Shown here one piece after another: positions 9,900 to 52,379 of a stretch of 64,000 nucleotides of DNA. The stretch is from IMG/VR virus record IMGVR_UViG_3300049217_000071, positions 62,001-126,000 of that record; one strand, written 5' to 3'. The notes under the pieces are model-generated. The model was not told where the DNA came from. It ran no database searches and saw only the letters and a program-made list of their open reading frames with translations. Each line of letters begins with the position of its first letter. Position 1 is the first letter of the stretch. The translations under genes and the position numbers were made by a program.

Positions 9900-9974
9900 T
9901 CAGGGTTCGACTAATGGTCGGTCGCAAGCCTCCGAAGCTTTGAAATATGGGTTCGAATCCCATACCCTGAACCA
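9900..9974 (+). tRNA. tRNA-Arg (CCG)
   Basis: TCAGGGT/ACCCTGA acceptor, aagc-ctCCGaa-gctt, CCA. Confidence 0.9.
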
Positions 9975-10153
9975 TGAAAACTTTAGAACACAACCTTTAT
10001 ATTGAAGTGCAAGACACTCCTGATGGTCAAAAGATCCTGGATGAGCTAGTGGTTTGGCTCTGTGGATTGAAACACGAATATCCTAAAGCATATCTCAATG
10101 GTTGGATCGGCCCAGTCAAAGAGACTAAGAAGAAGTCCAAAAAATCAAAATGA
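9974..10153 (+). CDS. hypothetical protein (59 aa, below the ORF-track cutoff)
   Basis: MKTLEQHLY...KKSK*; stop overlaps the stub ATG at 10150. Confidence 0.6.
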   Translation: MKTLEHNLYIEVQDTPDGQKILDELVVWLCGLKHEYPKAYLNGWIGPVKETKKKSKKSK

Positions 10154-10194
10154 AATCCTTGGGCAAGCTGGTTTACTCACCACGCACCCACCTC
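10150..10194 (+). pseudogene. orphaned N-terminal stub of the 10939 gene
   Basis: MKSLGKLVYSPRTHL vs MKSIGKLVYNPRSHL at 10939. Confidence 0.9.
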
Positions 10195-10891
10195 AAGACA
10201 GATTCTGCAATGCAGAAATCTGTCCAACCTTCGCAAGAAAATTCTCTTGGGAGAGTGTTCCCTTCATTTTATTGCACGTGAAACAGCAGGATACGCAGTT
10301 GTCCAACTCATATCCTCGATCGTTATCGATTCGATCAATGCCGTTTCTAACCTCCCTGCCGACTTGTGTTTTGGTATGCGGCAGATCACCGCAATAAAAG
10401 CATCGAGCCGTGCATAGTTGTTTGAACTCATCAACAGTCATATCGAAATGAAGACTAGATTTTCTGTGCAGATCTGCCCTTCTAACGATGACCCTGGCGA
10501 CATAGGATCTGTATTCTGTGGGCCATGGGTCTTTTGAAATGGACTTTACCTTGTTATAGCAGCCACAAGATACCGTAGGAGATTTACCAGGTCCACTCTG
10601 TACTCTCAAGTTGCTAATCAATACCGTAGTGGTATTGCCACATTCACACCGGCACAATACAGTTGGGCATCCGTTTTTCCAAGTCCCTACTCTCGCTAAC
10701 ACCGTAAGCTTTCCAAACGTCTGTCCAACATACCTGTAAGGTCTTTCTGATAGGTGTGCACTCTCGATCAATCGTCTGACTGCATGTTCCGAAAGCTTCA
10801 ATCGTTTGGAAATGCTTTTTCGGCTATGACCGGCCGCCCACAGTTTGAATATCTCGTCCGTTTGAACCTGGCTAAAAACGATCCTTTTCAT
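10193..10891 (-). mobile_element. free-standing HNH endonuclease gene
   Basis: HTH, G.TFGKLTV, CRCECG, SCGC, CFYCG, NGIDRIDN..GY...NCVSCC..CN..K; GAGGTG RBS before ATG 10891. Confidence 0.9.
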
Positions 10892-10938
10892 CTTGCACCT
10901 CTCACCCATTATGCCCATATATAGCGAACAGATGCCAA

Positions 10939-11343
10939 ATGAAATCCATAGGGAAGCTAGTGTACAATCCTCGTAGTCATCTAGGATCGAGTGAAAAGTG
11001 GGCCATTTTGGCATGTGATGATGAGATTTCCAAATACTACAGGCATCTCTTCACCAAGGACTACCCGTATTTGAACGGAGAGCGAGTGGGCAAGCTGACC
11101 CGTCCGGTGTGGGGAACTCACATTTCTATCATTCGAGGGGAATATATTCCGAACTTCAAGCTATGGGGTCTGGACGCCAACAAGGTGATCGAGTTCACTT
11201 ACGAAGGTGGCGTTATAGACAACGGTGAATACTACTGGTTGAAAGTCAACTGTCCTTATATTGGAGATTTGCGCGAGAAGTATGGGTTGAAGAGGGAGCC
11301 GAAATTTGGTTTCCATTTGACTATCGGGAGAACCACAGAATGA
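10939..11343 (+). CDS. putative 2H phosphoesterase
   Basis: two Hx[ST] motifs: THISII and FHLTIG. Confidence 0.65.
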   Translation: MKSIGKLVYNPRSHLGSSEKWAILACDDEISKYYRHLFTKDYPYLNGERVGKLTRPVWGTHISIIRGEYIPNFKLWGLDANKVIEFTYEGGVIDNGEYYWLKVNCPYIGDLREKYGLKREPKFGFHLTIGRTTE

Positions 11344-11443
11344 ATAAGAACGAAATCAAGAAGATGGAAATCAAGAACGCAGAAATTGTCGCTTTGGTTC
11401 TTCTATTCGGCATCCTGATTTGGCTGATTTTCAGGAGATAATT

Positions 11444-11770
11444 ATGAGCCAAGTAACATCTACCTTCTATATGATGTGTTGGGGTTGCAATAGAACTTTG
11501 CCACGTCCCTATCTTGGTGAAGAAGATTATGCTCGTCAAATGCAAGAGCTAATGACAATGGGTTGGCAGCGAAGGGTTTTTGGACCAGGCGCTGATCCTT
11601 GGTTCTGTAGTGATGACTGCGCCCACAACTCAGCCAATGCCAAACGAGCGGAAGCTTGGTGGGCCAATAAAAAGAACAAAGAAGAAGTCTCCCTTTACCT
11701 AACCATTGCGGGAAGCGGAATGCTTCTCCTCGTTGGTTTGGCAGCTTTACTGGTGGCGGTGTTTCGATGA
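11444..11770 (+). CDS. Zn-finger protein with C-terminal TM helix
   Basis: CWGC...FCSDDC; hydrophobic C-terminus. Confidence 0.6.
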   Translation: MSQVTSTFYMMCWGCNRTLPRPYLGEEDYARQMQELMTMGWQRRVFGPGADPWFCSDDCAHNSANAKRAEAWWANKKNKEEVSLYLTIAGSGMLLLVGLAALLVAVFR

Positions 11771-12432
11771 TTCATCACAATGAGTTCTATCTCAGCCTAA
11801 TTAGGCACGGTCAGTCGGCCGTCAATATCCAACCGGATATGATGGGCCAAGCACCAGATACTCCCTTGACTGATAAGGGTATTTCTCAAGCAGCACTGCT
11901 GGGACAGCGTCTCAAGGGAGAGGATAAGAAGTTCGACTACGTCTTTACCTCTGACTATATTAGGGCCTACAACACCGCTAAGATTGCGATGGGAGAAGAT
12001 TATCCAATGATAGTCAGCTCCGCTCTCCGAGAATATAGTGCAGGCGATTGGGATGGGGCCTCCCGTAAAGAGATTCAGACAGAACGTCTGAAGCTAAGAA
12101 TGGCCGCTATGACCAATGCCTTCTGTCCGCCTAATGGCGAATCATTGCATATGGTGGAGCGCCGAGCCTCCCAATGGTTGGAGGATACCGTCCTCTACAA
12201 CGAAGGATTTATCAACGAAACGGCCGCTCGTCATGAGCTTGGCCTCAAGCCGATGGAGATAGCAGTTTTCTCCCACGGTATGACTATCAAGTGTCTACTA
12301 CATTACATTATGGGGTTTGATCAGAGCTTTACTTGGAAGCTCACCCTGGAAAACACATCTATCTCAAAACTACATTTTGGAATGGAAGGATGGCGATTGC
12401 TTACGATCAATGATCACGCACATTTACTATGA
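11767..12432 (+). CDS. histidine phosphatase family protein
   Basis: LIRHGQS, LRE..AG.W, P..GES, FSHG, N.SIS, ND.AHL. Confidence 0.93.
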   Translation: MIHHNEFYLSLIRHGQSAVNIQPDMMGQAPDTPLTDKGISQAALLGQRLKGEDKKFDYVFTSDYIRAYNTAKIAMGEDYPMIVSSALREYSAGDWDGASRKEIQTERLKLRMAAMTNAFCPPNGESLHMVERRASQWLEDTVLYNEGFINETAARHELGLKPMEIAVFSHGMTIKCLLHYIMGFDQSFTWKLTLENTSISKLHFGMEGWRLLTINDHAHLL

Positions 12433-12962
12433 ATGAGGTCTCCATGGGAGTCCAAGAACGAAAACGACAAAAACGAATACGAGACTATGTTATTGACCGA
12501 GATGGAATGTTGTGCTGCTACTGCGACAAGGTGTTAGAGCCAGAGACTGTCACGATGGAACATATTGTTCCAGACAGTCGAAGAGGAACTTTCAATACGA
12601 CGAACCTGACCGTCTCCTGTGCAGAATGCAACAACAGACGAGGCAACAAGCCCTTCTTTGATTACTGTAAGAAGTTCAACTTCCCGGAAGATAAACTGAA
12701 TAAGTATAAGCAACTATACTTCAACAACTTACGAATCAAGGTATTGAATATCTCCAAAGAGGAATGTCTCAAAGATGATGAGGATATTCCGGCTGCGCTT
12801 ATCAAACGAGCTTGTCAGATTCTCAAGATCAAAAGCATGGACTTTGATGATTACGAGAAGGCTTATCCCTTTGAGATAAAATTCAGTGAGCCTTGCGACC
12901 GCAGAAAGATCAAGTTTTGTTTCGAGCAATTGATCAGGATTATCGAAGAAGACAGCAAGTGA
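12429..12962 (+). CDS. HNH nuclease
   Basis: RDG..CCYC, TMEHIVP.S..G, NL..SC..CN..RG. Confidence 0.9.
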   Translation: MNEVSMGVQERKRQKRIRDYVIDRDGMLCCYCDKVLEPETVTMEHIVPDSRRGTFNTTNLTVSCAECNNRRGNKPFFDYCKKFNFPEDKLNKYKQLYFNNLRIKVLNISKEECLKDDEDIPAALIKRACQILKIKSMDFDDYEKAYPFEIKFSEPCDRRKIKFCFEQLIRIIEEDSK

Positions 12963-12991
12963 GGCGATATATTTGGCATAGGAGATAAACT

Positions 12992-13282
12992 ATGCTAAAG
13001 CCACTCAGAGATTTCATCGTTGTATCGGTTGCCAAGAAGACGGAAGAGAAGACCCCCAGCGGATTACTGCATCTTCCCGGCAACATTGAAGAGAAGGTCG
13101 TCACTGGCCAAGTTGTTGCTGTAGGTTCCGGCTACTTGACAGACAGCGGAACCGTGGTTCCCTTGGAAGTCAAAGCCGGCGACAGTATCTTGTTCAACAA
13201 GCAGATGTCGGTAGAAGTCAAGCACGCAGGGGAAACAATGTTCCTTCTTCGTGAAGAGCACATTCTCAGCGTCATCAGCTAA
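12992..13282 (+). CDS. groES: co-chaperonin GroES
   Basis: LKPL.D, T.SGL.LP, G.VVAVG.G, PL.VK.GD, LRE..IL. Confidence 0.95.
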   Translation: MLKPLRDFIVVSVAKKTEEKTPSGLLHLPGNIEEKVVTGQVVAVGSGYLTDSGTVVPLEVKAGDSILFNKQMSVEVKHAGETMFLLREEHILSVIS

Positions 13283-20036: not shown

Positions 20037-20208
20037 CGGAATTGATAGAGTTGACAACGAGACGGGTTATATATTGGATAACTGTATTACGTGTTGTAAG
20101 ATATGCAATTACGCCAAATCTACGATGCCTTACGAAGATTTCATTACGTGGATCGATAATCTTGTCAAATATCGAGTATCACTAAATAATACGGAGAATG
20201 TCCTATGA
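20035..20208 (+). pseudogene. HNH endonuclease C-terminal remnant
   Basis: no start; NGIDRVDNETGYILDNCITCCKICNYAK, same family as the 10193 and 24278 HNHs; stop overlaps NAMPT ATG. Confidence 0.88.
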
Positions 20209-21602
20209 ATGAGAATTACCTGTTTGATACTGACAGCTATAAAGCAAGCCATTATCTTCAGTATCCCGAAAAAACCACGAGTATGTTTTCTTACGTCGAA
20301 AGCAGGGGCGGAGATTACAATGCAACCGTTTTCTTTGGGCTACAATACTTCCTCAAGGCTTATCTTACTTATCGCGTTACGCCCAAGGATGTGGAAGAAG
20401 CTAAAGAGTTCTATACTGCTCATGGCGTGCCATTCAATTATGATGGTTGGATGTATGTTGCTAAAGACCTAAAAGGTAGGTTGCCTGTCAGGATTAGGGC
20501 AGTGCCAGAGGGAACTATCGTTCCAACCCACAATATCTTGGTAAGCATCGAATCGACCGATCCTAAGGCCTTTTGGGTTGTTTCCTGGTTGGAGACAATG
20601 TTGCTACGATACGTGTGGTATGGAACTACCGTAGCCACCAGAAGTCGTAGAATTAGGCAGACAATCTTGGAAGCTTTGCGAAAGACTGCCGATGCTCCTG
20701 ATACAGAAATCAGCTTCAAACTTCATGACTTTGGTTCTCGTGGGGTGAGCAGCCAGGAAAGTGCTATGCTTGGAGGCGCAGCTCATCTCATCAATTTTAT
20801 GGGCAGCGATACCATCGCGGGCATCAGATGCGCTAACAAATACTACGACTGCCCGATGGCAGGTTTTAGTATTCCTGCTGCGGAACACTCTTCTATCACT
20901 TCGTGGGGTAAAGAACACGAGGTAGATGCGTATGCCAACATGCTAACACAGTTTGCCAAACCAGGAGCTTTGGTAGTTGTGGTAAGCGATAGCTATGATT
21001 TGTGGAATGCCTGTGAGCATCTCTGGGGCGAACAGCTCAAGCAGAAAGTTATAGATTCCGGTGCGACGGTTGTAATTCGTCCTGATAGTGGCCATCCTCC
21101 GGCCGTAGTGCTCAAGACCCTACAGATATTGGATAGTAAGTTTGGACACACAATCAATACTAAGGGGTATAAAGTCTTGAACAATGTTAGGGTTATCCAA
21201 GGTGATGGCATCAATGAGCACTCGATAAGAGACATTCTGAATGAGTTTATGTGGGATAAATACAGTGCCACCAATGTTGCCTTTGGTATGGGTGGTCAGC
21301 TATTGCAAGGTCTCAACCGAGACACTCTCAAGTTTGCTATGAAGTGTTCTTCCATTACTGTCAATGGTGAAGTGCGAGATGTCTTCAAGGATCCGATCAC
21401 CGATCACGGTAAAGTAAGCAAGGCAGGACGCTTGGATCTGGTCAAACGAGATGGTCATTTTGAGACGATTGAGATTAGCCGAGGAGACCAGGCTTCTCAC
21501 GACAACTTCAGTGAGATGCAAACTGTCTATGAGAACGGTCAGATTTTGATTGACGATACGTTCGAGAATATCCGTGCTCGTGCTAAAGGAGAAATGGTAT
21601 AA
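20205..21602 (+). CDS. nadV: nicotinamide phosphoribosyltransferase (NAMPT)
   Basis: TDSYKASH, HDFGSRG, SIPAAEHS, VSDSYD, IRPDSG, IQGDG, FGMGG.LLQ, RDT..FA.K. Confidence 0.95.
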   Translation: MNENYLFDTDSYKASHYLQYPEKTTSMFSYVESRGGDYNATVFFGLQYFLKAYLTYRVTPKDVEEAKEFYTAHGVPFNYDGWMYVAKDLKGRLPVRIRAVPEGTIVPTHNILVSIESTDPKAFWVVSWLETMLLRYVWYGTTVATRSRRIRQTILEALRKTADAPDTEISFKLHDFGSRGVSSQESAMLGGAAHLINFMGSDTIAGIRCANKYYDCPMAGFSIPAAEHSSITSWGKEHEVDAYANMLTQFAKPGALVVVVSDSYDLWNACEHLWGEQLKQKVIDSGATVVIRPDSGHPPAVVLKTLQILDSKFGHTINTKGYKVLNNVRVIQGDGINEHSIRDILNEFMWDKYSATNVAFGMGGQLLQGLNRDTLKFAMKCSSITVNGEVRDVFKDPITDHGKVSKAGRLDLVKRDGHFETIEISRGDQASHDNFSEMQTVYENGQILIDDTFENIRARAKGEMV

Positions 21603-22749: not shown

Positions 22750-23042
22750 TGACTATCGAAGAAGAGATTCAACATCTCATTACGTTTTTACGACACCCTG
22801 GTGGATTCGATGTAGATATGAGTGGGATCTTATGTATTCGTCCTATTGATGAGGGCTCTCCTCCTACTTCCTGGGAAGTTGATTGGGAAGAGATAGATGA
22901 CGGTATCATCCTCAATTTCTCAAAAGAATTTCCCAACCTTGAAGAGGCGGCTCAGTTCTTCGTGGAGAAAAGGCACTACCTGTGTGAAGGTGCGGATTTT
23001 CAATTGATAAGAATGAAAGAAGCGGGATTGATCAATGAGTAA
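22746..23042 (+). CDS. hypothetical protein
   Basis: ATGA coupling. Confidence 0.6.
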   Translation: MMTIEEEIQHLITFLRHPGGFDVDMSGILCIRPIDEGSPPTSWEVDWEEIDDGIILNFSKEFPNLEEAAQFFVEKRHYLCEGADFQLIRMKEAGLINE

Positions 23043-23949
23043 TGTCATACTGGGAACGGCAGTAGCGGATGCTTTGGGAATGCCCTTCGAGAAGAAGCTG
23101 TCTAACGACCCGCTTTTGTTGGCTTGGGACGGTAAGACCTTTTTAGGCAGCGAGCATCATAAGCTGAAGCCGGGTCAATGGACAGACGATTCGCAATTCT
23201 CTCAGGCGGTTGCCCAATCTCTGATTCAGAATAATGGATTCAATCCACAGGATTTGGCCGATCGTTATGTGGATCTGTTTACTTCGGAAACCATTCGAGG
23301 TTATGGAAGAACTACTTTGTTGGCCGTGACCAACCTCTTGGAAGGGAAGCACTGGAGTGAATCTGGCGTAGCCGGTTCCTATGGTAATGGCACGGCAATG
23401 AGAGCCGCCCCCTTCGGTATTTACTTCCGCAATGACTTGAAGATGTTGGTAGAGGCTTGCAAGATTGATAGCGCCATCACTCATGCTTCCGAAGAAGCCG
23501 AGGCCGGTTCTATCGCCATTGCTTTGGCCACAGCCTATGCGGTCAATAATGATCTGGAAGATGTATTGGAGCGCCTGCATGAGAAACTGCCTGACAGTAA
23601 GGTCAAGACACTGGTGTATAGTTTGAGTGCCTTGCTGGATACCAAGCACATTGCTCCTTCAACGGCTCTGCGTGTTCTGGGCACCAAGGCTGATGTGAGA
23701 GAGACAGTGCCTTCTGCCCTATATTGCTTCCTCAAGTTCAAGAAGTATGGGGACGCTGTTATTGCGGCTATTCGAGCCGGGGGAGATACTGATACTACAG
23801 GCGCCATTGTTGGCGCGATGTTTGGAGCTAAGCTGGGGATGAACGGAATGGATCGTGCCATCTATCAGCAGGTAGAAGATTTCGATAAGCTGGTGGAATT
23901 AGATAGCCAGCTTTACAATCGATCCAACGACAACTTTCTAAGGAACTAA
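23035..23949 (+). CDS. ADP-ribosylglycohydrolase (DraG/ARH family)
   Basis: G.AVADALG, WTDD, GNG.AMR, ITH, GGDTDT.GA. Confidence 0.95.
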   Translation: MSNVILGTAVADALGMPFEKKLSNDPLLLAWDGKTFLGSEHHKLKPGQWTDDSQFSQAVAQSLIQNNGFNPQDLADRYVDLFTSETIRGYGRTTLLAVTNLLEGKHWSESGVAGSYGNGTAMRAAPFGIYFRNDLKMLVEACKIDSAITHASEEAEAGSIAIALATAYAVNNDLEDVLERLHEKLPDSKVKTLVYSLSALLDTKHIAPSTALRVLGTKADVRETVPSALYCFLKFKKYGDAVIAAIRAGGDTDTTGAIVGAMFGAKLGMNGMDRAIYQQVEDFDKLVELDSQLYNRSNDNFLRN

Positions 23950-28160: not shown

Positions 28161-28814
28161 ATGAAGCTTGATTTCAAGATCAAAGAAGTTAGACCGAAGG
28201 TCTTCTTGTTCGAGTTCAAGGACACATACGATATGTGTATGCACTTCTTGCGTTATCAGGAATACTACGAGTCCGCCTCTTCTAAATACAGGGGCCATAA
28301 GTTTACCATCTTCGACTTTATGCGATGGTATTCCAAAACCTACGGCCACGGTGCTTTTACCTATTGCACTGATTGGGATGGTTTCAATATTCCTGGCTCT
28401 GTTATTAGGGAGATAGCAACCCGGGGCATTTTAGATTACAACAAGTATGATCGAGCTATGTGGGAAGGTTATTGCCACGGTGTCAATAAAGCTGGCAACA
28501 AAATCTATATCATTGGCGCTGTCAATGGTAGCAACGCCCTCAAGCACGAAGTGGCTCACGCCTTCTTTTACCTGCATCCAAAGTATAAGAAGGAGATGAC
28601 CAAGCTGGTCAAAGCTTTACCGGCTACTATCACAGATAAGATGAAGCATCATCTCAAAAGAGTAGGTTATACACCCAAGGTTTATGTAGATGAAATGCAA
28701 GCATACTTATCTACTGGACTAACGGAATTGTTTGGACACGATACTACTAAGTGGAAAACAGAACGTGAGCCATTTGAGAAAGCGTTCAACGAGTTTTACG
28801 GAGAATCAAAATGA
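28161..28814 (+). CDS. HExxH putative metallopeptidase
   Basis: FLRYQEYYES; LKHEVAHA; DEMQAY. Confidence 0.7.
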   Translation: MKLDFKIKEVRPKVFLFEFKDTYDMCMHFLRYQEYYESASSKYRGHKFTIFDFMRWYSKTYGHGAFTYCTDWDGFNIPGSVIREIATRGILDYNKYDRAMWEGYCHGVNKAGNKIYIIGAVNGSNALKHEVAHAFFYLHPKYKKEMTKLVKALPATITDKMKHHLKRVGYTPKVYVDEMQAYLSTGLTELFGHDTTKWKTEREPFEKAFNEFYGESK

Positions 28815-29641
28815 GTAGCAAGGATAGTTTAGGCGATCGTATGAAGTCTTATGAGGACTCTTATCGATTTAGTTTGCCAGTCAGATTGCCAGTGATTGTA
28901 AGGGTTGACGGGAAAGCCTTTCATACTTACACCAAGAATTGTAAGCGTCCCGTAGATCCGGGCCTGGTGGAATGTATGAACTTGACCGCTATGGAGCTGT
29001 GCAAGACGATGCAGGGCTGTCAATTGGCCTACGTGCAGTCAGATGAGATCTCTCTCTTGCTAACCAATTTCCAAACGGTGGATACTCAGTCGTGGTTTGA
29101 GAACAACCTACAAAAGATGGTCAGCGTAGCTGCCTCTATTGCGGGCGTCACCTTCACTACCAACTCAGAGGAGATTTGGGGATATGGCGGTGATATGGGA
29201 GACTTCCCTATTCAGAAGCCCGCTTACTTCGATGCTCGTGCTTTCGTCCTTCCCAAGGAGGAAGTATGCAACTACTTCTTGTGGAGACAGTTAGATGCTA
29301 CCCGCAACTCGGTGCAGATGTTGGCTCGTAGTATCTATTCTCACAAGCAACTGGAGGGAAAGAACAACTACGAATTGCAAGAGATGATTTTCAATGCCGG
29401 TACCAACTGGGATAAATGCCCTATCCCTCAGAAGAGGGGTCGCTGTATTGTCAAGACCAAGATAGAGAAAGAAGCTTTCAACCCCAAGACCAAGCAGACT
29501 GTCAAGGCTTTGCGTTCTGAGTGGATAGTGGATAATGAAATCCCTATTTTCTCTCAAGACCGCCGATACATCGATAAGTTCTTGTTTCCCAAGGAAGTCT
29601 TGGAATCTTGGGACTTGACTGCGAATGAGTTGACCCCGTAA
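28811..29641 (+). CDS. tRNA(His) guanylyltransferase-like protein (Thg1/TLP)
   Basis: RMK.YE, RVDGKAFH, YVQSDEISL, FDAR, YFLWRQ.DA.RNS. Confidence 0.95.
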   Translation: MSSKDSLGDRMKSYEDSYRFSLPVRLPVIVRVDGKAFHTYTKNCKRPVDPGLVECMNLTAMELCKTMQGCQLAYVQSDEISLLLTNFQTVDTQSWFENNLQKMVSVAASIAGVTFTTNSEEIWGYGGDMGDFPIQKPAYFDARAFVLPKEEVCNYFLWRQLDATRNSVQMLARSIYSHKQLEGKNNYELQEMIFNAGTNWDKCPIPQKRGRCIVKTKIEKEAFNPKTKQTVKALRSEWIVDNEIPIFSQDRRYIDKFLFPKEVLESWDLTANELTP

Positions 29642-29651: not shown

Positions 29652-30719
29652 ATGAGCAATATTACTCCCAGCATCGAGAGCAAAATCGGGCGCGGTCTCT
29701 ACAAGATTGCGGAGCACCCGTTGTGCATTGTCAAGGAGAAAGTGTTTGAGTATTTCGATGATATGGCCCGTATCGAGATAGATACCCCATATGTTTCTGT
29801 GATCGATAATTTCGATAGACTACGTGTGCCTCCCGATCATCCTTCCAGGCAAGCGACCGATACCTACTACAAAGATGATAGCACCTGTCTCCGCACTCAC
29901 ATGACTTGCTACCTATATCCATTAGGACAGTCTAAAAGTGGAGAGAGTCAGCTTCGCTACATCACTTGTGGAGATGTGTATCGTAAAGATGCCATTGATG
30001 CCACTCACTATCCCGTCTTCCATCAAATGGATGCCTTCTATATTGTGGATGATGAGGTGGATGTCAAGAAGCACTTGCGAAAGAAGTTGACCGGCTTGGT
30101 CAAGCATCTCTTCGGCACCAAAGTAGACTTCCAATTCCTGGAAGACTCAGAACACAAAGATGTCTACTTCCCCTTCACGGTAGATTCTTTGGAAGTTAGT
30201 GTCTCGCTCAAGGATGAAAACGGTCAGATTCAGCAGTTGGAAATTTTGGGGGCAGGCACCGTCCATCCTGAAATTATGACCGCTTTGGGCCTGCCTAATA
30301 AAAGAGCTTGGGCCTTCGGTTTGGGTCTGGAACGTCTGGCTATGGTGATGTTTGACATTCCTGACATTCGATTGTTCTGGTCTACCGATAAGCGTTTCAC
30401 CAGCCAGTTCACATCAGGTCAGATTACCAAGTTCGTCCCCTTCTCTAAGTATGAAGTTTGCTACAAGGACATATCTTTCTACTTGAGCAACGGGTTCTCT
30501 TACAACGATTTGTGTTCTATTGCCCGAGATGAGGATGCCGACAACTTGATCGAATCTATTGCGTTAGTGGATGCTTTCGAGCACAAAGGGCGAGCCTCGC
30601 ATTGTTATAGGATCACATACCGTTCGATGGATAGCACGCTCCGTAATGCAGACGTCAACAAAATCCAAAAGGGTATTCGAGAAAGAGTAGCTTCGGAATT
30701 AGGAGTAGAGATTAGATGA
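29652..30719 (+). CDS. single-chain (mitochondrial-type) phenylalanyl-tRNA synthetase
   Basis: HP.R...DTYY, LRTHMT, YRKD.IDATHYPVFHQM, YFPFT, LEILGAG, WAFGLGLERLAM, DIR.FW, C-terminal FDX-ACB (KDISF...CYRITYRS). Confidence 0.93.
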   Translation: MSNITPSIESKIGRGLYKIAEHPLCIVKEKVFEYFDDMARIEIDTPYVSVIDNFDRLRVPPDHPSRQATDTYYKDDSTCLRTHMTCYLYPLGQSKSGESQLRYITCGDVYRKDAIDATHYPVFHQMDAFYIVDDEVDVKKHLRKKLTGLVKHLFGTKVDFQFLEDSEHKDVYFPFTVDSLEVSVSLKDENGQIQQLEILGAGTVHPEIMTALGLPNKRAWAFGLGLERLAMVMFDIPDIRLFWSTDKRFTSQFTSGQITKFVPFSKYEVCYKDISFYLSNGFSYNDLCSIARDEDADNLIESIALVDAFEHKGRASHCYRITYRSMDSTLRNADVNKIQKGIRERVASELGVEIR

Positions 30720-33130: not shown

Positions 33131-35002
33131 ATGTCATCAAATCGCATTACCGAGCTGGCTGATAAGATTACCCAGGCTCGATTGGACTATTACAATGGTC
33201 AGCCAACCGTTTCTGACAAGATTTTCGATGCTTGGGCCGATGAGCTTCGCACCCTGGACGCTAATCACATAGCTTTGACGGCTGTAGGTGCTCCTGTCGG
33301 CCCTTCCGAATGGAAGAAAGCTAAGCACCAGATCCCGATGGGATCTCTCAACAAAGTCAATCAACCTGCCGAAATGTTGGACTGGGCCAGTGATAAGAAC
33401 TGCAAGTCCTGGTTTATGACGGAAAAGCTGGACGGACTCTCTATAGAAGTGATCTATGAGGGTGGTAAGGTGGTACAAGCCATTACCCGAGGTGATGGTG
33501 AGACGGGCGAAGACATTACGGTCAACGTGATTCGTATGGGTGGAGTCAATCCCGATTTGAAAACTGACTTCAATGGTTCCCTTCGTGGTGAAATCATTAT
33601 GAAGAAGAGCATTCATCAGAAGTTCTTCGCTGATAAAGCCAATCCTCGCAATGCAGCTTCTGGTGTTTCCAAGCGTTTGGATGGTGTGGATGTGGATAAG
33701 CTCGACATTCTCTTCTACCAAGTTTTGGGTGATGTAGATTTCAAAACGGAAGAAGACCAGTTCAAGTGGTTGCAGAAGCATAAAGTCGGCACTCCCAACT
33801 ATTGGATCTGGAGTTCGGCTCTTGCCATCAATGTTATGTGGCGTGAATACCAAGACAAAGAGCGCGATAAGCTGGATTATGATATCGACGGACTGGTGGT
33901 TCGTATCAATGACATGGCCGATCAAATGGCTTGTGGTGATAAAGACCTCCGCCCCTTGGGTGCTATGGCCTTCAAGTTTGACAATGAGACCCGTGAGAGC
34001 ACTATCAAAGACATCATCTGGCAGGTGGGCAACAGTGGACGCCTAACTCCGGTGGCTGTGGTGGAGCCCGTTCTCCTGGTGGGAGCTATGGTTTCCCGAG
34101 CCAGCTTGTATAACATTGCCTACATTGAGGAATTGGGTTTGGATATCGGGGCCCGCGTCCTGGTGGCCCGAGCTAATGACGTGATTCCTCGCATTGAGGA
34201 GTTGGTCAAGGGTACCAAGACGGTAGCCAAGATGCCCAAGAAGTGTCCTGATTGTGGTGGAATAGTGGATATGCAGGGTGAGAACCTGATTTGCACCAAC
34301 ACGGAGAACTGCCGATCCCAGATCATTGGTCGCATCAAGAACTGGATCAAAGAACTCAACCTGTTGGAGTGGGGGGATTCTTTGGTGGAGAAGTTGGTGG
34401 ATGCTAAGAAGGTCAAGAACATTGCTGACCTCTATACTCTTCAAGTGGATGACATTTCCAAGTTGGATCGCTTGGGAGATAAGACGGCCAAGAAGTGTTT
34501 GGATATCTTGAACGCTAATAAGAATGTAGCTTTGGAAGTCTTTTTAGGCGCTTTATCCATTCCAACTATTGGGCAATCGACGATTAAATTAATAATGAAA
34601 GATGGTTGTGATACTTTAGAAAAGTTTGGTCAGTTAAGTAGCGTTCAATTTGAGCAGGTATCGGGAGTAGGTCCGGTCAAAGCGCGATTTTTAGCTGATG
34701 GACTCAAACATAATCAGCAACTAATCCTTGATTTGTTAAAAAATGGAGTGGAGATCAAAGAAATTGTTGATGGCAAATTGACTGGTAAAAGTTTTGCTAT
34801 TACTGGAACGCTCTCTATCAAGCGCGCTGAGGTTGAAAAATTGATTCAAGACAATGGCGGTGAAGTGAAAAGTAGCGTTGGAAAAGGATTGAACTACCTA
34901 ATTATTTCTGATCCACAATCTACCAGCAGTAAAGCACAAGCCGCCCGAAAGTTGGGTACCGTTCTTATTAACGAGGCACAATTTTTAGACTTGATTAGCT
35001 AA
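33131..35002 (+). CDS. ligA: NAD+-dependent DNA ligase
   Basis: EKLDG, TRGDG..GEDIT, NPRNAA, DGLVV, Zn finger, HhH, BRCT. Confidence 0.97.
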   Translation: MSSNRITELADKITQARLDYYNGQPTVSDKIFDAWADELRTLDANHIALTAVGAPVGPSEWKKAKHQIPMGSLNKVNQPAEMLDWASDKNCKSWFMTEKLDGLSIEVIYEGGKVVQAITRGDGETGEDITVNVIRMGGVNPDLKTDFNGSLRGEIIMKKSIHQKFFADKANPRNAASGVSKRLDGVDVDKLDILFYQVLGDVDFKTEEDQFKWLQKHKVGTPNYWIWSSALAINVMWREYQDKERDKLDYDIDGLVVRINDMADQMACGDKDLRPLGAMAFKFDNETRESTIKDIIWQVGNSGRLTPVAVVEPVLLVGAMVSRASLYNIAYIEELGLDIGARVLVARANDVIPRIEELVKGTKTVAKMPKKCPDCGGIVDMQGENLICTNTENCRSQIIGRIKNWIKELNLLEWGDSLVEKLVDAKKVKNIADLYTLQVDDISKLDRLGDKTAKKCLDILNANKNVALEVFLGALSIPTIGQSTIKLIMKDGCDTLEKFGQLSSVQFEQVSGVGPVKARFLADGLKHNQQLILDLLKNGVEIKEIVDGKLTGKSFAITGTLSIKRAEVEKLIQDNGGEVKSSVGKGLNYLIISDPQSTSSKAQAARKLGTVLINEAQFLDLIS

Positions 35003-38416: not shown

Positions 38417-39880
38417 ATGGGAAGCGTCAAAGTTGAAGAATCTATTAAACAATGGACTCTTAACTATACTGACATAATTTTGAATAGTAATAAATTCTAT
38501 TCACTTGAGGTAGTTAAAACTAATAAAGGCTATTTCTTATACACCCAATATGGCAGGGTCGGAGGCACCAAAGCCAAGGAATATCGCCAATGCTCCGATC
38601 AAGCTGATGCCGAATCTGAAGCTACCAAAATCGTCAAAGCTAAAACCAAGAAAGGATATGTAGAAGTATCTTTGGTCAAGTCGGATGTCGGAAGTGATGC
38701 TGCCCAAGCTAAAATAGAAAAAGTCTCAGCTACCACTGAACAACTAAAGAAAGCTGGTATTACCGTTAAAGAAGAGCCTGCCGTTGCCAGCAAACTTCAT
38801 ACAGAGGTTCAGGATTTAGTCAGAACATGGTTCGGCGTAACTCAAGAGTTCGTCGATCTTAACCTTGACACATCCAAATGTTCTTTAGGACAACTTTCAA
38901 TTCTACAGATTACCAAAGGCAAAGACCTATTGGATGAAGCTCGCAAAATTGTTCATATGACAAAACCAGATGAACAAGAGCTTAATAAGTTGACTAATTC
39001 TTACTATAGCAATATTCCTCACAATTTTGGTTATACCAGAATTGATGCCAACGCTTTGCGTTTGGACTCAGACGTTAAGATTGATAAGGCTTTTGATATG
39101 CTTGACGTTCTAAATCAAGCTAAAGATGTCGAAGCAGTTATCTCCAAGAAGAGTGCAGTCGATGCACAGTATGCTACTCTCAATGCCGACCTTGAGTTCA
39201 TTGAGCAGGGTACTCCCACGTTCAAGTGGATTGAGAAGATGGTTCTGGAAACCCGAGCCAGCAACCACAGCGGCTTAGGTAAACTGAAGGTTCACAAGGT
39301 CTTCCGTGTCACTCGTCACGATGAGGACAAGCGATTCATTGAGAATTGCCAAGTCATCGCCAAGGAGTGCGGTAAGTTCGTGCCCTCTGATGTGTATGCT
39401 GGTTTGGTCAAGAACCGTCCTGATGTTCCCAAGGCATTGGAAGACCTCTACCACAAAGCAAATGTCCTTCCTGGTTGGCACGGAACTCGTAGAGCCAATA
39501 TGATTGGTATTACCACCAAGGGACTTCTTATTCGTCCTTCTGGTGTTATTCACGCTGGTAGTATGTTTGGAGATGGCTGTTATTTTGCTTCATCTTCGTC
39601 AAAATCAATTAATTATTGTGATGTTAAGGGATCATATTGGGCACAAGGAAATAATAAAACAGGATATCTATTTCTGTGTGATGTAGCTTTTGGAAATCAA
39701 AAAATGGCTACTGGCTCACATTATTATAATTCAAATAACATCAAGCCATATCACAGCGTATGGGCTAAAGCTGGTCAAGGCGGAGTTATTAATGATGAAA
39801 TGATTACTTACCATGCTACGGGACCAAATCAGCAGCATGCTATAAAATATATAATCGAGTTTGAGACGCAGGTGAAGTAA
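38417..39880 (+). CDS. PARP-family ADP-ribosyltransferase (WGR + regulatory + catalytic)
   Basis: NKFY..E, QYGRVG, K.KKGY; LGQLS..QI; YYS.IPH; WHGT, G.MFG.G.YFA..SSKS.NY, NDE (H-Y-E). Confidence 0.93.
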   Translation: MGSVKVEESIKQWTLNYTDIILNSNKFYSLEVVKTNKGYFLYTQYGRVGGTKAKEYRQCSDQADAESEATKIVKAKTKKGYVEVSLVKSDVGSDAAQAKIEKVSATTEQLKKAGITVKEEPAVASKLHTEVQDLVRTWFGVTQEFVDLNLDTSKCSLGQLSILQITKGKDLLDEARKIVHMTKPDEQELNKLTNSYYSNIPHNFGYTRIDANALRLDSDVKIDKAFDMLDVLNQAKDVEAVISKKSAVDAQYATLNADLEFIEQGTPTFKWIEKMVLETRASNHSGLGKLKVHKVFRVTRHDEDKRFIENCQVIAKECGKFVPSDVYAGLVKNRPDVPKALEDLYHKANVLPGWHGTRRANMIGITTKGLLIRPSGVIHAGSMFGDGCYFASSSSKSINYCDVKGSYWAQGNNKTGYLFLCDVAFGNQKMATGSHYYNSNNIKPYHSVWAKAGQGGVINDEMITYHATGPNQQHAIKYIIEFETQVK

Positions 39881-47429: not shown

Positions 47430-47513
47430 GCCTATGTGGCGGAATGGCAGACGCGCTCGTCTCAAACACGAGTCCCGAAAGGGGTGTGGGTTCGACTCCC
47501 ACCATCGGTACCA
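47430..47513 (+). tRNA. tRNA-Leu (CAA)
   Basis: ctcgt-ctCAAac-acgag, long variable arm, CCA. Confidence 0.93.
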
Positions 47514-47514
47514 A

Positions 47515-47775
47515 TCATTTCAGGTTCTTGTAAGTCTTGATTCCCCTTCGTAGCAGTATTCTTCCCAATGTAGAATTGGTGATTTCGTTCTCAAAGAACT
47601 CTTCGTTGATATTATTGATGTCTTCTAAATCTGAAGCACTTACTCTAATGTTGAGCTGATAGGTATAAGTGTATCCATCATTGGCGGGAAAGCCAGGATG
47701 TCCTGGAAATCGTTTTCCATAACCATCACTGTAGCCGTCATTATCAACATTGTATATGTGTTTGTTTTTAGGCAT
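47515..47775 (-). CDS. possible ribbon-helix-helix DNA-binding protein
   Basis: AAGGAGG RBS; LNIRVS..D...I.......STLGR.LL..G. Confidence 0.5.
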   Translation of the reverse strand: MPKNKHIYNVDNDGYSDGYGKRFPGHPGFPANDGYTYTYQLNIRVSASDLEDINNINEEFFENEITNSTLGRILLRRGIKTYKNLK

Positions 47776-47850
47776 TTAGCCTCCTTGTTAGTTTCGTTAG
47801 GCTCGTTAGCTTTCCTACTCATAACTCTTTATTGATAGATCCGGTGCAAA

Positions 47851-48238
47851 ATGGGTGATGTGCAAGTTTATAAGCTGGTGCTCCAGGTGAGCCCAAGTTC
47901 TCGGATGACTTCGAGGTGGTCAAGAAAGCTGTTCTGCAAGTAACGGATATCAAGACTAACCGCAACAAATACTACGCTATTGAGCTGCACTCCAACAAAG
48001 ACAAGTACCGTGTCTTCACTCATTATGGCCGCACGGATGATTTGGATAGCAATCCTAATGCAGGTGCCCGAGAGGGAAGATGAAAAACTACTCCAATATT
48101 ACTTATGGGCTGAAAGAGCCGCCGGCCGGATATGATAGTTGCCACGGAGTTAGAGGAACGCAGTTCGCAGATGATGAGTTTGTTATCTATTCTCATGACC
48201 AGCAAAAGCTGGAATATTTGGCGGAATGCACTTATTGA
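47851..48238 (+). pseudogene. second PARP gene, frameshifted and internally deleted
   Basis: WGR part: TDIKTNRNKYYAIELH...VFTHYGRT; 48080-48238: GYDSCHG...DDEFVIY...QQKLEYLAE (PARP catalytic end). Confidence 0.8.
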
Positions 48239-48254
48239 GGAAAATTAGCTGGGC

Positions 48255-48283
48255 TTGACCATTCAACCGCCCATCGTTATATT
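48255..48283 (+). promoter_or_regulatory. sigma70-type promoter
   Basis: TTGACC-17nt-TATATT. Confidence 0.65.
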
Positions 48284-48299
48284 AGGTCGAGAGGTTATA

Positions 48300-48911
48300 A
48301 TGTTCAAGAAAATTGCTTTGGTTTGTGCTTTAGTATTGGCTGGTTGTGCTTCGCCTACTGCGGTTGCAGTGCAGCCGGTTGTTCCAGTCAAAGCAGAACC
48401 CCCAGCTTGGGTAGTTCTCAAGACCGCTAATTACTCTATCTCAGTCCCACCTGATTTCATCAATGTCAAGGACTCTAAAGAAAACCTTTTGGACTTTGTC
48501 TATAAGTCTCCCGACAGTATGTTGGTGCTAACTTTGACAACCGATCAAACTACGGATGATCTGGATACTTATGCCAGCGCTTTCGTGCAAGCAATGATCA
48601 ATGATGGGGCCGACCTCTTGCAAGCTAAAGAGGGAATGATGGGTGGGCTCCGAACCGCACTTCTTGTGATGGGGATGAACCGTAGATTTATTACTCTGCA
48701 CTTCTTGGCCCAAGACAACAGGATAATGGCCGGTGGGGCAGCCAGAGGCCCGAACTCTCCTAAAGTTGCTACCAAGGTGTATTACGTCAGTTGTGCCATC
48801 AATCCCTTGATGCTCAAAGATAAAGCCGCTACTTGCTTGGAAATCACCAAGAGTTTTACTCCTGCACCGATAGGAGACGATGCCGTTCACATCAGGAAGC
48901 TCCCTGAATGA
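48300..48911 (+). CDS. putative lipoprotein
   Basis: lipobox LAGC; YSISVPPDF (PsbP/DcrB-like). Confidence 0.75.
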   Translation: MFKKIALVCALVLAGCASPTAVAVQPVVPVKAEPPAWVVLKTANYSISVPPDFINVKDSKENLLDFVYKSPDSMLVLTLTTDQTTDDLDTYASAFVQAMINDGADLLQAKEGMMGGLRTALLVMGMNRRFITLHFLAQDNRIMAGGAARGPNSPKVATKVYYVSCAINPLMLKDKAATCLEITKSFTPAPIGDDAVHIRKLPE

Positions 48912-49026
48912 GTTTTTGGATGCACCTGTTGCTGGCGGTGAGTTTGACGCTGACTTTTAGCCTCTTGGCTTATCAGTTATTTTTCGATGAATAACATAGC
49001 AATAACGAGATATATACATACCAAAT

Positions 49027-49112
49027 GTCACTGTGGTGTAATGGTAGCCACGAAAGTTTTAGAAGCTTTTGCTCGAAAGGGCGTGTAGGTTCGAGTCCTA
49101 TCAGTGACACCA
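49027..49112 (+). tRNA. tRNA-Leu (TAG)
   Basis: aaagt-ttTAGaa-gcttt, long arm, CCA. Confidence 0.93.
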
Positions 49113-49115
49113 AAT

Positions 49116-49201
49116 GCGGTTGTGTTGTAATGGTAGCCAAGGCAGAATGAGAGTCTGTTGGGGGAAACCCCGTGTAGGTTCAAGTCCTATCAACCGCACC
49201 A
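49116..49201 (+). tRNA. tRNA-Leu (GAG)
   Basis: gcaga-atGAGag-tctgt, long arm, CCA. Confidence 0.9.
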
Positions 49202-49207
49202 AATAAT

Positions 49208-49293
49208 GCTCACGTGGCGGAATGGTATACGCGAATGTCTCAGAAGCATTTGGGAGAAATCCCTTGGAGGTTCAAGTCCTCTCGTGAGCACCA
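49208..49293 (+). tRNA. tRNA-Leu (CAG)
   Basis: aatgt-ctCAGaa-gcatt, long arm, CCA. Confidence 0.93.
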
Positions 49294-49301
49294 ATTATTG
49301 A

Positions 49302-49667
49302 TTAGCTATACTTTTTGACTAACCTATCGACAATCGTAGCGATATTAGTTGAAGCAACAGGTGGGGTTGGCTTATTGATTTCTTTGATCCACCACATCAG
49401 TCTGTTGTAAGTTTCCAAACTTTGCTTGGCTAAAATCTTGCCTTGAGTGCTGACATCGGATTGAATGGTAGGTAGCACTTGACTTTGCAAGTCAAAAGCC
49501 ATCTGACTCAACTGTGTATAGAGTGGTCGTTTATCAGCAGGTAATGTGTTGGAATGCTGTTGTTGTTGAAGTTAGGTGATAAAAGCTTCAGCCTGTTCAA
49601 TAGCTTCACCAGCGGCTTCTAAATTAGCAGCCTGTCCATACCTCTTGAAGAGTTGTTCTAAAGACAT
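49302..49667 (-). pseudogene. paralog of the C-terminal domain of the upstream gene, with in-frame TAA (49572-49574)
   Basis: MSLEQLFKRYGQAANLEAAGEAIEQAEAFIT*LQQ...LYTQLSQM vs MNAAGDVISKATAFLQAL...IYLQLQQM. Confidence 0.7.
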
Positions 49668-50782: not shown

Positions 50783-50846
50783 TGAAACCTCTTTCGACAG
50801 GTGGTATAGAAGAGACATACTAATAATTACGGGATTATTGCCATAG

Positions 50847-51323
50847 ATGGTCGAGTTTAGTAATAGGGAAAGTTTGCTGGCTTGGGCGGCAGGTTTGTTC
50901 GATGGTGAAGGAACAATCTATATTTCCAAGGCTAGAATTAGAGCTTCCGTTCATATGACAGATCTGGATATCTTGGAAACTTTTCGCTCTAACTTTGGTG
51001 GTTTCATCCATCCACAGAAGAAGCAAAAAGAACATCATAAAAAGTCGTGGAGATGGTCTTTGCAGGCTTCAGATAAGGCAATGTCTTTCTTGACGGATAT
51101 ATTACCGTTTTTACACGCCAGGAGATCAAAAAGGGTGGCAGAGGCAATTAGCTGCTATTCTCTGGCGATGCAGGAAAGAAAATCCAAGCAAAATAAGGTA
51201 AAGGAAGTAAGGGAGAAGATTAGAGAATTAGGAAAAACTGATATGACGCATAAAGACATATCAATATTATTCCATGTAGATAGAAGCTACGTTTCCCATG
51301 TGCTAAATGGGTCTTACGTATAA
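50847..51323 (+). mobile_element. single-motif LAGLIDADG endonuclease gene in tRNA region
   Basis: LAWAAGLFDGEGTIYI; FL..ILPFL; C-terminal HTH. Confidence 0.88.
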
Positions 51324-51326
51324 TAT

Positions 51327-51402
51327 GGTGTCGTTTGTCATCTAGTGATGATGGCTGACTGTGAATCAGCTAAGGCGAGTGCAATCCTCGTACGACACCC
51401 CA
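51327..51402 (+). tRNA. tRNA-His (GTG) with encoded G-1
   Basis: G-1:C73, gctga-ctGTGaa-tcagc; T-loop TGC rather than TTC. Confidence 0.9.
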
Positions 51403-51410
51403 AGCCAAAT

Positions 51411-51485
51411 GGCTCGTTCGTCTATCGGTTAGGACAAGAGGCTTTCAACCTCTGAAGAGGAGTTCGACTCTCCTACGGGTCACCA
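51411..51485 (+). tRNA. tRNA-Glu (TTC)
   Basis: agagg-ctTTCaa-cctct, CCA. Confidence 0.93.
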
Positions 51486-51503
51486 GCAGCACAAACCAGT
51501 AAT

Positions 51504-51578
51504 GGTCCCATCGTCTAGCGGCTAGGACGCGACCCTCTCAAGGTCAAAACACGGGTTCGATTCCCGTTGGGATCACCA
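51504..51578 (+). tRNA. tRNA-Glu (CTC)
   Basis: gacc-ctCTCaa-ggtc, CCA. Confidence 0.93.
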
Positions 51579-51610
51579 AAGCTATCAATAGCTTGATATA
51601 GTTAGAGTAT

Positions 51611-51685
51611 GCCTCTGTGGTCCAAGGGATGGGCAGCCGCCTTCTAAGTGGCCTTATGTAGGTTCGAATCCTACCAGAGGTGCCA
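51611..51685 (+). tRNA. tRNA-Arg (TCT)
   Basis: gccgc-ctTCTaa-gtggc, CCA. Confidence 0.92.
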
Positions 51686-51696
51686 GATAGTTAGAT

Positions 51697-51771
51697 GCGC
51701 TTATGGTCTAATGGAAGGGCAACAGCCTACGAAGCTGTCCTATGCAGGTTCGAGTCCTGCTAAGCGCGCCA
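51697..51771 (+). tRNA. tRNA-Arg (ACG)
   Basis: acagc-ctACGaa-gctgt, CCA. Confidence 0.93.
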
Positions 51772-51772
51772 A

Positions 51773-52210
51773 ATGAAAGTCTGCACAAAGTGCAAATTCG
51801 ATTATCCTGCACCATTGGAAGATCATTTCAATAGAAGAAGTTCAGCTAAAGACGGATTTCAATACCGTTGTAAAAAGTGTATGGTTGAAGTTCATAAAGA
51901 GCACTACCAAGAGAATGTGTCCTACTATAAAAAGAAGGCGCTAAAACACAACGCTAAATATAGACTAAGAAATCTTCAGTATATGGTTGATTATCTCAAA
52001 CAGCACCCATGCGTTGACTGTCCCGAAATAGATCCGGTAGTACTAGAATTTGATCATCGTGGTAATAAAGATTACAATGTCGGCGAGATGTCGAATTACA
52101 GTTTGAGCACTATAATAAAAGAGATTGCGAAGTGTGATATAAGGTGTGCCAATTGTCATAAACGAAAGACGGCCAAGCAATTCAACTACTATCAAGGTAT
52201 TACTTTGTAA
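51773..52210 (+). mobile_element. HNH endonuclease gene between tRNA-Arg genes
   Basis: CTKC, CKKC, PCVDC, LEFDH, EIAKC.IRCANCH. Confidence 0.88.
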
Positions 52211-52224
52211 GAATATGTCTCTAT

Positions 52225-52299
52225 GTCTCTATGGTCCAATGGAAGGGCAGCGGCCTTCGAAGCCGCCTTATGTAGGTTCGAGTCCTATTAGAGATACCA
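52225..52299 (+). tRNA. tRNA-Arg (TCG)
   Basis: gcggc-ctTCGaa-gccgc, CCA. Confidence 0.92.
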
Positions 52300-52302
52300 C
52301 AT

Positions 52303-52379
52303 ACGCCTGTAGCTCAGTTGGATAGAGCGCAACCCTGCGAAGGTTGAGGTCATCGGTTCGAATCCGATTAGGCGTGCCA
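52303..52379 (+). tRNA. tRNA-Arg (GCG)
   Basis: caacc-ctGCGaa-ggttg, A20, G73, CCA. Confidence 0.92.

Follow-up and report, generated by a model that had tools for sequence, protein, structure and literature searches.

Huge phages, those with viral genomes >200 kb, can carry dozens of tRNAs (up to 67) together with a transfer-messenger RNA (tmRNA), elongation factor Ts (EF-Ts), aminoacyl-tRNA synthetases and RNA ligases, and the parts of the survey by Al-Shayeb et al. (2020) drawn on here interpret these translation genes as redirecting or sustaining translation (PMC7162821). While large tRNA sets in such phages are known, their assembly and decoding rules have rarely been worked out. Here we analyse the arginine tRNA genes of IMG/VR virus record IMGVR_UViG_3300049217_000071 (268,344 bp, and thus itself of huge-phage size; CheckV completeness 62%), centring on a 64,000-nt stretch (the window; record positions 62001-126000) that holds tRNA-Arg genes bearing anticodons CCG, TCT, ACG, TCG and GCG. 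With a probability that we put at roughly 0.6, this Arg set is part of a near-complete huge-phage tRNA complement, has at least two origins, and would free arginine decoding from the host tRNA pool and from the host's status with regard to the tRNA-editing enzyme TadA. The phage resembles those of the survey in its 53 tRNAs, tmRNA, EF-Ts, phenylalanyl-tRNA synthetase (PheRS), Thg1-like enzyme and three RNA ligases. The parts of the survey drawn on contain no analysis of anticodon strategy, whereas the Arg box is followed here gene by gene (six anticodons, two origins, ACG together with GCG).

Three further systems offer close comparisons. In Mollicutes without TadA, tRNA-Arg(GCG) and tRNA-Arg(UCG) decode CGN; GCG replaces ACG on loss of tadA, and a point mutation in the tRNA-Arg anticodon has been proposed as the route (Yokobori et al. 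2013, PMC3711424). The phage GCG and TCG tRNAs would likewise be able to decode CGN without inosine. The phage, however, keeps both ACG and GCG, unlike the Mollicutes and the Chloroflexota, Planctomycetota and Patescibacteria that we checked, in which GCG replaces ACG, and its GCG gene was apparently acquired rather than mutated in place. In T-even phages, the homing endonuclease SegB lies in tRNA clusters, where it drives tRNA gene amplification (PMC13096335), and the tRNA region is inherited preferentially owing to it (PMC2330249). As in that setting, a phage tRNA cluster here contains a free-standing homing endonuclease; at the present locus paralogous tRNAs flank it, and the endonucleases are polymorphic between strains. 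SegB is a GIY-YIG enzyme; the cluster endonucleases here are not members of that family but HNH and LAGLIDADG-like proteins with predicted cleavage activity, and where T6 has a recent tandem repeat of identical copies, the copies here are old (18-27% diverged) and bear new anticodons. Finally, phage tRNAs have been linked to counter-defence against anticodon nucleases (PMC10264068), against PARIS in the case of a T5 tRNA (PMC11464382) and in retron evasion (PMC11555353). The likeness is that the phage brings its own copy of a tRNA open to depletion by a host nuclease; those cases involve loop or stem differences from host tRNAs, or experiments, whereas the loops here are canonical and nothing marks out Arg.

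ARAGORN identified 17 tRNAs in the window, all on the plus strand and each confirmed by Rfam RF00005 (44.6-70.4 bits; gathering score 29), among 53 tRNAs plus a tmRNA in the 268-kb record. The five tRNA-Arg genes listed in an earlier note on this DNA were all recovered by both programs (Table 1), and its impression that tRNAs are grouped by amino acid was borne out, since 26 of the 52 neighbouring tRNA pairs share their amino acid, against 2.2 expected (p<1e-5). A sixth tRNA-Arg, CCT, lies outside the window. All six form a canonical cloverleaf with an encoded CCA, and all six anticodon loops are canonical (YU-NNN-AA). The E. coli-type identity set for arginyl-tRNA synthetase (ArgRS) consists of A20, C35, G36 or U36, and A73 or G73. 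A20, C35 and G/U36 are present in the GCG, ACG, TCG, TCT and CCT tRNAs, with GCG carrying A20, C35, G36 and G73. The D-arm of tRNA-Arg(CCG) is atypical (a 3-bp D-stem, no A20/A21), and the gene is conserved in the complete relative G001; the same tRNA has a U1-A72 pair and is 68% identical to the phage's own tRNA-Gln(TTG).

Together, the six anticodons provide a Watson-Crick reader for every Arg codon, and Arg is the sole six-codon family with its own Watson-Crick tRNA for each codon; four-codon boxes generally combine G34, U34 and C34. Across the record, 43 sense anticodons read 43 codons by Watson-Crick pairing and 17 more by standard wobble, which leaves only ATA unread (60 of 61). The commonest Arg codon in the phage is CGT (28%); CGT and CGC together make up 43%, and CGG 2.5% (1.2 per 1000 codons). 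The GCG tRNA scores 67.9 bits against the Rfam model, third best among the window tRNAs. A lake-water contig from another study's metagenome spans 52297-52451, and so all of the GCG gene plus the flank downstream of it, with 0 differences, so its G34 is not an assembly error.

The TCT, ACG and TCG genes share a body that we call type B. The motif TGGTC.AA.GGA.GGGCA, which had suggested duplication with anticodon change from the letters alone, occurs exactly three times in the window, once in each of these genes, vs 0 expected by chance, and their mutual identity (73-82%) lies at the top of 1378 tRNA pairs genome-wide (mean 55%, 99th percentile 69%). In sister phages the type-B body carries TCT only (22 related loci). 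The nearest relative of tRNA-Arg(TCG) anywhere is the TCT gene of one such phage (L004; 83% identity), and in a maximum-likelihood tree the phage TCT, TCG and ACG genes are nested inside the type-B clade with support 94/97, all of which agrees with the duplication proposed earlier. In a comparison of five type-B genes, base pairs differ at 13 of 21 places, at 10 of them because both partners changed, and the 105 pair cells contain no non-canonical pair; because pairs were kept canonical through two-sided changes, all type-B copies are under structural selection. A search for long flank homology as proof of segmental duplication found just 3-4 shared nt beyond the tRNAs.

The free-standing HNH gene lies between the ACG and TCG genes. 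Homologs occupy the Arg clusters of L001/L021 and L004/L005 (tblastn, 63-66% identity), and the gene has zero depth in lake and soil strains (X3-X5). The LAGLIDADG-like gene just upstream of the Glu-Arg unit is cleanly absent from the lake strain (X3 joint 50829->51324). An 8-nt tandem duplication where the 3' end of the HNH gene meets the 5' end of the TCG tRNA is a possible recombination scar. Since SegB-type endonucleases promote inheritance and amplification of adjoining tRNA genes, we favour an origin of the type-B trio by duplication and subsequent single-base anticodon changes (TCT -> TCG -> ACG). One type-B gene, TCT in the sister phages, would have multiplied around the resident HNH endonuclease; the single-base steps would have retargeted the copies while leaving the ArgRS identity elements A20, C35 and G/U36 intact, and the new copies would have taken over the slots of older ACG and TCG genes. 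Such anticodon changes stay within one amino-acid identity and therefore would carry no mischarging risk.

The GCG gene appears to have a separate origin. It was absent from 22 of 22 related loci and from 5 of 5 large related genomes. Directly downstream of it lies a 150-aa ORFan that is also absent from all 22 related loci and has no homolog in viral contigs and no Pfam or PHROG match, followed by an open reading frame (ORF) conserved in all relatives; on this comparative evidence, GCG and the ORFan are a lineage-specific insertion in a variable spot at the cluster end. We considered and rejected the idea that the two form a mobile cassette, the ORFan having no relatives in viral contigs. A consensus scan matched a terminator-like hairpin shortly after the tRNA and otherwise only weak promoter-like sequences. 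The GCG tRNA is 80-82% identical to chromosomal tRNA-Arg(GCG) of Dehalococcoidia; its identity to 87 GCG tRNAs has a median of 78% and a maximum of 82%, compared with 68% and 74% for 102 pattern-matched viral ACG tRNAs that agree with it in D-arm and variable loop. Its anticodon stem belongs to the C-A-R-C-C / G-G-Y-U-G type seen in GCG tRNAs of cells; with the GCG tRNAs compared it shares 6-10 of 10 stem positions (a figure that holds for 75 of the 87; 12 lay outside the parsing pattern, and one shared 4), vs 0-4 of 10 for the 102 ACG tRNAs (p=3e-29).

In the tree, the phage GCG groups with GCG tRNAs (88/93), apart from the ACG group of type A, the canonical ACG form of the clade. An identical 27-nt anticodon arm occurs in 13 metagenome contigs, nearly all of them dense tRNA arrays, with G+C of 0.38-0.68, the closest being 85% identical. 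Other GCG-bearing phages have few proteins in common with the present one, and the EF-Ts of its clade was not found in their available parts. Distant matches to the GCG tRNA proved to be tRNA-Arg(TCT) of T5-like Vibrio phages. The gene is most plausibly a member of a GCG-type lineage that was acquired, not a fresh A34-to-G mutant, though tRNAs are too short for this to be certain; it would have entered the variable spot at the cluster end together with the ORFan. By these comparisons the Arg tRNA set has at least two origins, type-B multiplication and GCG uptake.

The two readers of CGU and CGC (CGY) are alternatives in cells, in line with the proposal for Mollicutes (PMC3711424), as their counts almost never overlap in samples of Chloroflexota (GCG only in 59 genomes, ACG only in 12, both in 1) or Planctomycetota (4, 65 and 0). 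The earlier note's remark that ACG alongside GCG is unusual thus holds for cells, in which both occurred in 1 of 141 pattern-positive genomes of these phyla. Its description of GCG as rare fits phages, with the GCG pattern in 5 viral contigs vs at least 120 for the matched ACG pattern, but does not extend to the Chloroflexota sample, where GCG is the majority Arg-CGY tRNA. Among prokaryote genomes, at least 120 species had the GCG pattern, those listed being mostly Chloroflexota, Planctomycetota and Patescibacteria. In five GCG-bearing genomes (Dehalococcoidia, Uhrbacteria, Planctomycetota and others), a relaxed ACG pattern matched no better than its reversed control, and no TadA scored above cut-off. 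By these pattern counts, GCG-for-ACG replacement is far wider than the Mollicute case in the literature that we found.

The combination that is odd for cells is nevertheless recurrent in tRNA-rich phages, since 3 of about 10 examined GCG-bearing arrays with at least 10 tRNAs also contain ACG (the present phage, L082 and L348); L082 repeats the TCG-GCG adjacency as well. Two other loci hold several GCG genes, four with two CCG genes within about 1 kb in L260 (JAJPJO010000334.1, a 'Proteobacteria' metagenome-assembled genome, MAG) and three with TCT, CCT and TCG in 2.4 kb in L342; both are probably mobile tRNA arrays rather than chromosomal loci.

Whether the phage ACG tRNA is edited is likely to depend on the host, because its loop is a perfect TadA motif: TadA recognises a YUACGAA loop closed by a stem (PMC12255301), and the phage has CUACGAA on a 5-bp stem. 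We looked for a phage-encoded TadA or ArgRS as well, and found no PF00383 match, no homolog of the small deaminase of some relatives and no ArgRS in the 268-kb record (62% of the genome). The relatives' small HAE..PCxxC deaminases (Table 1) match TadA best in NCBIfam, weakly (29 bits vs a cut-off of 150). They do not occur in step with A34 tRNAs: G002 has a deaminase and no A34 tRNA, and G001 has three A34 tRNAs and no deaminase. A second A34/G34 pair in the present phage, tRNA-Ser(ACT) beside Ser(GCT), splits AGU and AGC; the Ser(ACT) loop, CUACUAA, does not fit the TadA motif, so its A34 is probably unmodified. Other unusual A34 tRNAs in relatives are Leu AAG and Pro AGG (G001), Phe AAA (G003) and Val AAC (L023). 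We make no claim of a G34/A34 switch between Leu genes in one slot (GAG vs AAG), whose orthology is not settled.

From the genes, structures, relationships and distribution set out above, we infer a decoding model that extends to expression, charging, editing state and selective benefit. GCG, TCG and CCG would decode all four CGN codons without inosine. The ACG tRNA would directly read CGU, which the phage uses more than any other Arg codon, and with TadA provided by the host it would turn into an inosine-34 reader. In its unmodified state A34 is a good reader of CGU but copes poorly with CGC and CGA, where it raises frameshifting (PMC10454642), and in the model these are exactly the codons covered by GCG and TCG. 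The outcome would be Arg decoding independent of the host tRNA pool and of host TadA status, as the earlier note had suggested in part. Independence from TadA is plausible, given GCG in genomes without detected ACG or TadA, the recurrence of TCG-GCG in L082 and the Mollicute parallel (PMC3711424). Host-independent Arg decoding also fits the phage's EF-Ts, PheRS, Thg1-like enzyme, tmRNA and RNA ligases, and our best reading is that inosine- and host-independent decoding of Arg would form part of a wider translation-autonomy module.

Several observations weigh against this reading. The ~38% of the genome outside the record could encode a deaminase, and some relatives have the small HAE..PCxxC enzyme, once beside tRNA genes (G002). 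A TadA-positive host would turn ACG into ICG, making GCG and TCG largely redundant. The tRNA tree has many unresolved forks, and the GCG acceptor and T arms also resemble tRNA-Arg(TCT) of T5-like phages. GCG occurs solely in the present lineage and in near-identical strains, which leaves long-term selection for it conjectural. The slot order TCT-ACG-HNH-TCG is the same in L001/L021, whose three bodies are unlike one another, and gene conversion, which endonuclease-induced breaks promote, could have homogenised three pre-existing genes while sparing their anticodons. This form of concerted evolution would require tracts flanking a 3-nt anticodon on both sides, in two genes, among paralogs that are already 18-27% diverged with compensatory changes; the single steps TCT -> TCG -> ACG are simpler and agree with the tree order, and we regard conversion as doubtful. 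For the GCG gene, an origin in place from the clade's type-A ACG gene (A34-to-G), after the type-B ACG took over, would follow the step proposed for Mollicutes (PMC3711424) and would suit both its position at the end of the cluster that holds type-A ACG genes and the resemblance of its acceptor stem and D-arm to those of L004, L014 and L001 (68% overall). The small overlap of its anticodon stem with those of ACG tRNAs (0-4 of 10 positions), its place in the tree and the spread of the identical 27-nt arm among unrelated arrays make this route very unlikely.

Even as an acquired gene, GCG might be a recent and effectively neutral passenger that homing-endonuclease traffic or illegitimate recombination brought in and that has yet to be purged. 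Its restriction to one lineage, the adjoining ORFan in a variable segment, the nearby mobile endonucleases that differ between strains and its redundancy if ACG is edited would all suit a passenger; its perfect cloverleaf with all Arg identity elements and encoded CCA, its identity in an independent lake sample and the recurrence of the TCG-GCG pairing and of ACG with GCG in unrelated arrays, which suggests repeated retention, speak for a retained gene, and we give the passenger idea a minor share of the probability. A safeguard against anticodon nucleases specific for tRNA-Arg (colicin D-like or other tRNases), in which extra isoacceptors replace or out-titrate cleaved host tRNA-Arg, had also been raised. 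Phage tRNAs have been proposed or shown to counter tRNA-cleaving defences (PMC10264068, PMC11464382, PMC11555353, PMC13096335), the genome encodes three Rnl2-family ligases (one with a phosphoesterase) and a Thg1-like tRNA 5'-end enzyme, and homing endonucleases flank the Arg cluster, as SegB does in T6. None of this concerns Arg in particular: the six anticodon loops are all canonical, Arg is not singled out given that nearly all amino acids have multiple tRNAs, and searches for RtcB and T4 Rnl1 (the latter run without a positive control) found neither; nuclease backup thus finds no Arg-specific support, and we think it unlikely. Codon-usage compensation, the classic explanation of phage tRNAs, would have the Arg tRNAs serve codons used more heavily by the phage than by its host, and two genes, ACG and GCG, do serve the CGT and CGC that make up 43% of its Arg codons. 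A dedicated CCG tRNA for so seldom used a codon, one gene per Arg codon regardless of use (1.2 to 13.2 per 1000) and coverage of 60 of 61 codons point to a complete repertoire rather than a supplement, and dosage is an improbable account of the set.

Table 1 Features of the window, of the remainder of the genome (g, genome positions) and of related loci.
Feature	Position	Strand	Remarks
tRNA-Met(CAT); Val TAC, GAC, CAC; Gly TCC, GCC	3331..6327	+	grouped by amino acid
EF-Ts	7758..8699	+	PF00889 E=5e-44
tRNA-Arg(CCG)	9900..9974	+	solitary; ortholog of CCG gene in complete relative G001, tree support 100/99
NAMPT, ADP-ribosylglycohydrolase, eukaryote-like PARP (WGR + regulatory + catalytic)	20205-21602, 23035-23949, 38417-39880		NAD/ADP-ribose set
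Thg1-like tRNA 5'-end nucleotidyltransferase	28811-29641	+	directly precedes PheRS
Monomeric mitochondrial-type PheRS	29652-30719	+	catalytic domain + FDX-ACB
tRNA-Leu(CAA), then TAG, GAG, CAG	47430..49293	+	Leu group; ARAGORN, Rfam
Second homing endonuclease, weak LAGLIDADG	50847..51323	+	phrog_5046; just upstream of Glu-Arg unit
tRNA-Glu(TTC) + tRNA-Glu(CTC)	51411..51578	+	first genes of Glu-Arg tRNA unit, syntenic across clade
tRNA-Arg(TCT)	51611..51685	+	type-B body
tRNA-Arg(ACG)	51697..51771	+	type-B body; loop CUACGAA
Free-standing HNH homing endonuclease	51773..52210	+	phrog_2255 E=5e-30
8-nt tandem duplication (ATGTCTCT twice)	52215..52230	+	junction HNH 3' end / tRNA(TCG) 5' end; read from sequence
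tRNA-Arg(TCG)	52225..52299	+	type-B body
tRNA-Arg(GCG)	52303..52379	+	canonical 77-nt body; closes Glu-Arg unit
Terminator-like hairpin AGCUCC-GCAA-GGAGCU + T-run	52382..52407	+	3 nt past GCG tRNA; consensus pattern match only, putative function
ORFan, 150 aa	52408..52860	+	directly downstream of GCG
ATPase + DUF2201/VWA pair	53913-56780		precedes rIIA/rIIB; conserved clade-wide
rIIA + rIIB homologs	57885-60933		phrog_612 E=1e-81; phrog_609 E=6e-72
tRNA-like gene, apparent 4-base anticodon TAAT	g 33569-33647		27 bits (Rfam), below gathering score
Three stand-alone Rnl2-family RNA ligases	g 138228-138791, 142244-142765, 52612-53142		loci L338, L339; outside window
tRNA-Ser(ACT) beside Ser(GCT)	g 58438-58525		outside window
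tmRNA	g 157740-158091		tag ADEFAFAEAA
Two CTA (amber suppressor) tRNAs	g 161750-161822, 163289-163362		outside window
tRNA-Arg(CCT)	g 164973		sixth Arg tRNA; outside window
Small HAE..PCxxC zinc deaminases, 112-132 aa	L159 1483-1872, L157 1498-1836, L158 1432-1830		in G002, G003 and G004, respectively

The EF-Ts of the phage has at least 120 related protein clusters (60-73% identity), mostly on 430-500 kb contigs, which indicates that this huge-phage group is large and widespread. The PheRS matches human mitochondrial PheRS at E=4e-70, vs about 1e-30 for bacterial alpha subunits, and its position side by side with the Thg1-like gene makes an unusual pair for a phage. Behind one of the Rnl2-family ligases comes a calcineurin-like phosphoesterase, and their order hints at a pair for RNA end healing and sealing; the searches of the genome for RtcB and for T4 Rnl1, the latter run without a positive control, gave no match. 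The NAD/ADP-ribose genes may serve NAD+ salvage or counter-defence.

The record comes from a moss metagenome, and near-identical pieces also occur in lake-water and soil metagenomes from other studies; a megablast search of INPHARED returned no near-identical deposited phage. As related contigs reach 446-452 kb, one of them with direct terminal repeats, the full genome is probably ~430-450 kb. The Leu-(His)-Glu-Arg tRNA cluster is syntenic over 22 related loci, upstream of a DUF2201 gene. An attempt to assign a host through EF-Ts was abandoned: the best 120 matches were proteins of the phage clade, and the one 'Saccharimonadales' match was a mis-binned phage fragment. That fragment, GenBank MAG contig DATCDO010000057.1, bears the label Candidatus Saccharimonadales; it shares the Kelch/HNH context, has neither rpsB nor pyrH and belongs to the present huge-phage group.

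The two CTA tRNAs, also found in relatives G001-G003 and G006, raised the idea of TAG recoding, which we rejected. Coding density under code 11 is high (83% overall, 94-98% in the late half of the 268-kb record), TAG readthrough merges no long ORFs and, read as sense, yields no additional ORF of at least 500 aa in the record. TAG ends 12 of 282 called genes, and genetic code 11 was used throughout, with no alternative code adopted. Recoded genes might lie in the absent ~38% of the genome.

We also consider, tentatively and as a doubtful reading, that Arg decoding is wobble-free and modification-free as an adaptation to host range or host shut-off, with A34 reading CGU, G34 CGC, U34 CGA, C34 CGG, and UCU and CCU the two AGR codons; Ser ACT and GCT, for AGU and AGC, would be a parallel case. 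If true, the phage would translate equally in hosts with TadA and in GCG-using lineages without detectable TadA, such as much of Chloroflexota, and two otherwise mutually exclusive cellular strategies would be combined as an adaptation to host range or host shut-off.

The locus is a well-documented, not an unprecedented, case of a large phage probably freeing translation from its host. As we read it, it offers a natural example of tRNA genes gaining new anticodons after duplication beside a homing endonuclease, and of the lateral uptake of an isoacceptor that characterises bacteria in which neither an ACG gene nor TadA is detected. Inosine-dependent (ACG) and inosine-independent (GCG) CGY readers coexist in it though they are almost mutually exclusive in cells, and the accompanying survey indicates that replacement of ACG by GCG is common across entire bacterial phyla, beyond the Mollicutes. 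If its tRNAs are expressed, this phage would provide a simple system for testing phage independence from host tRNA modification.

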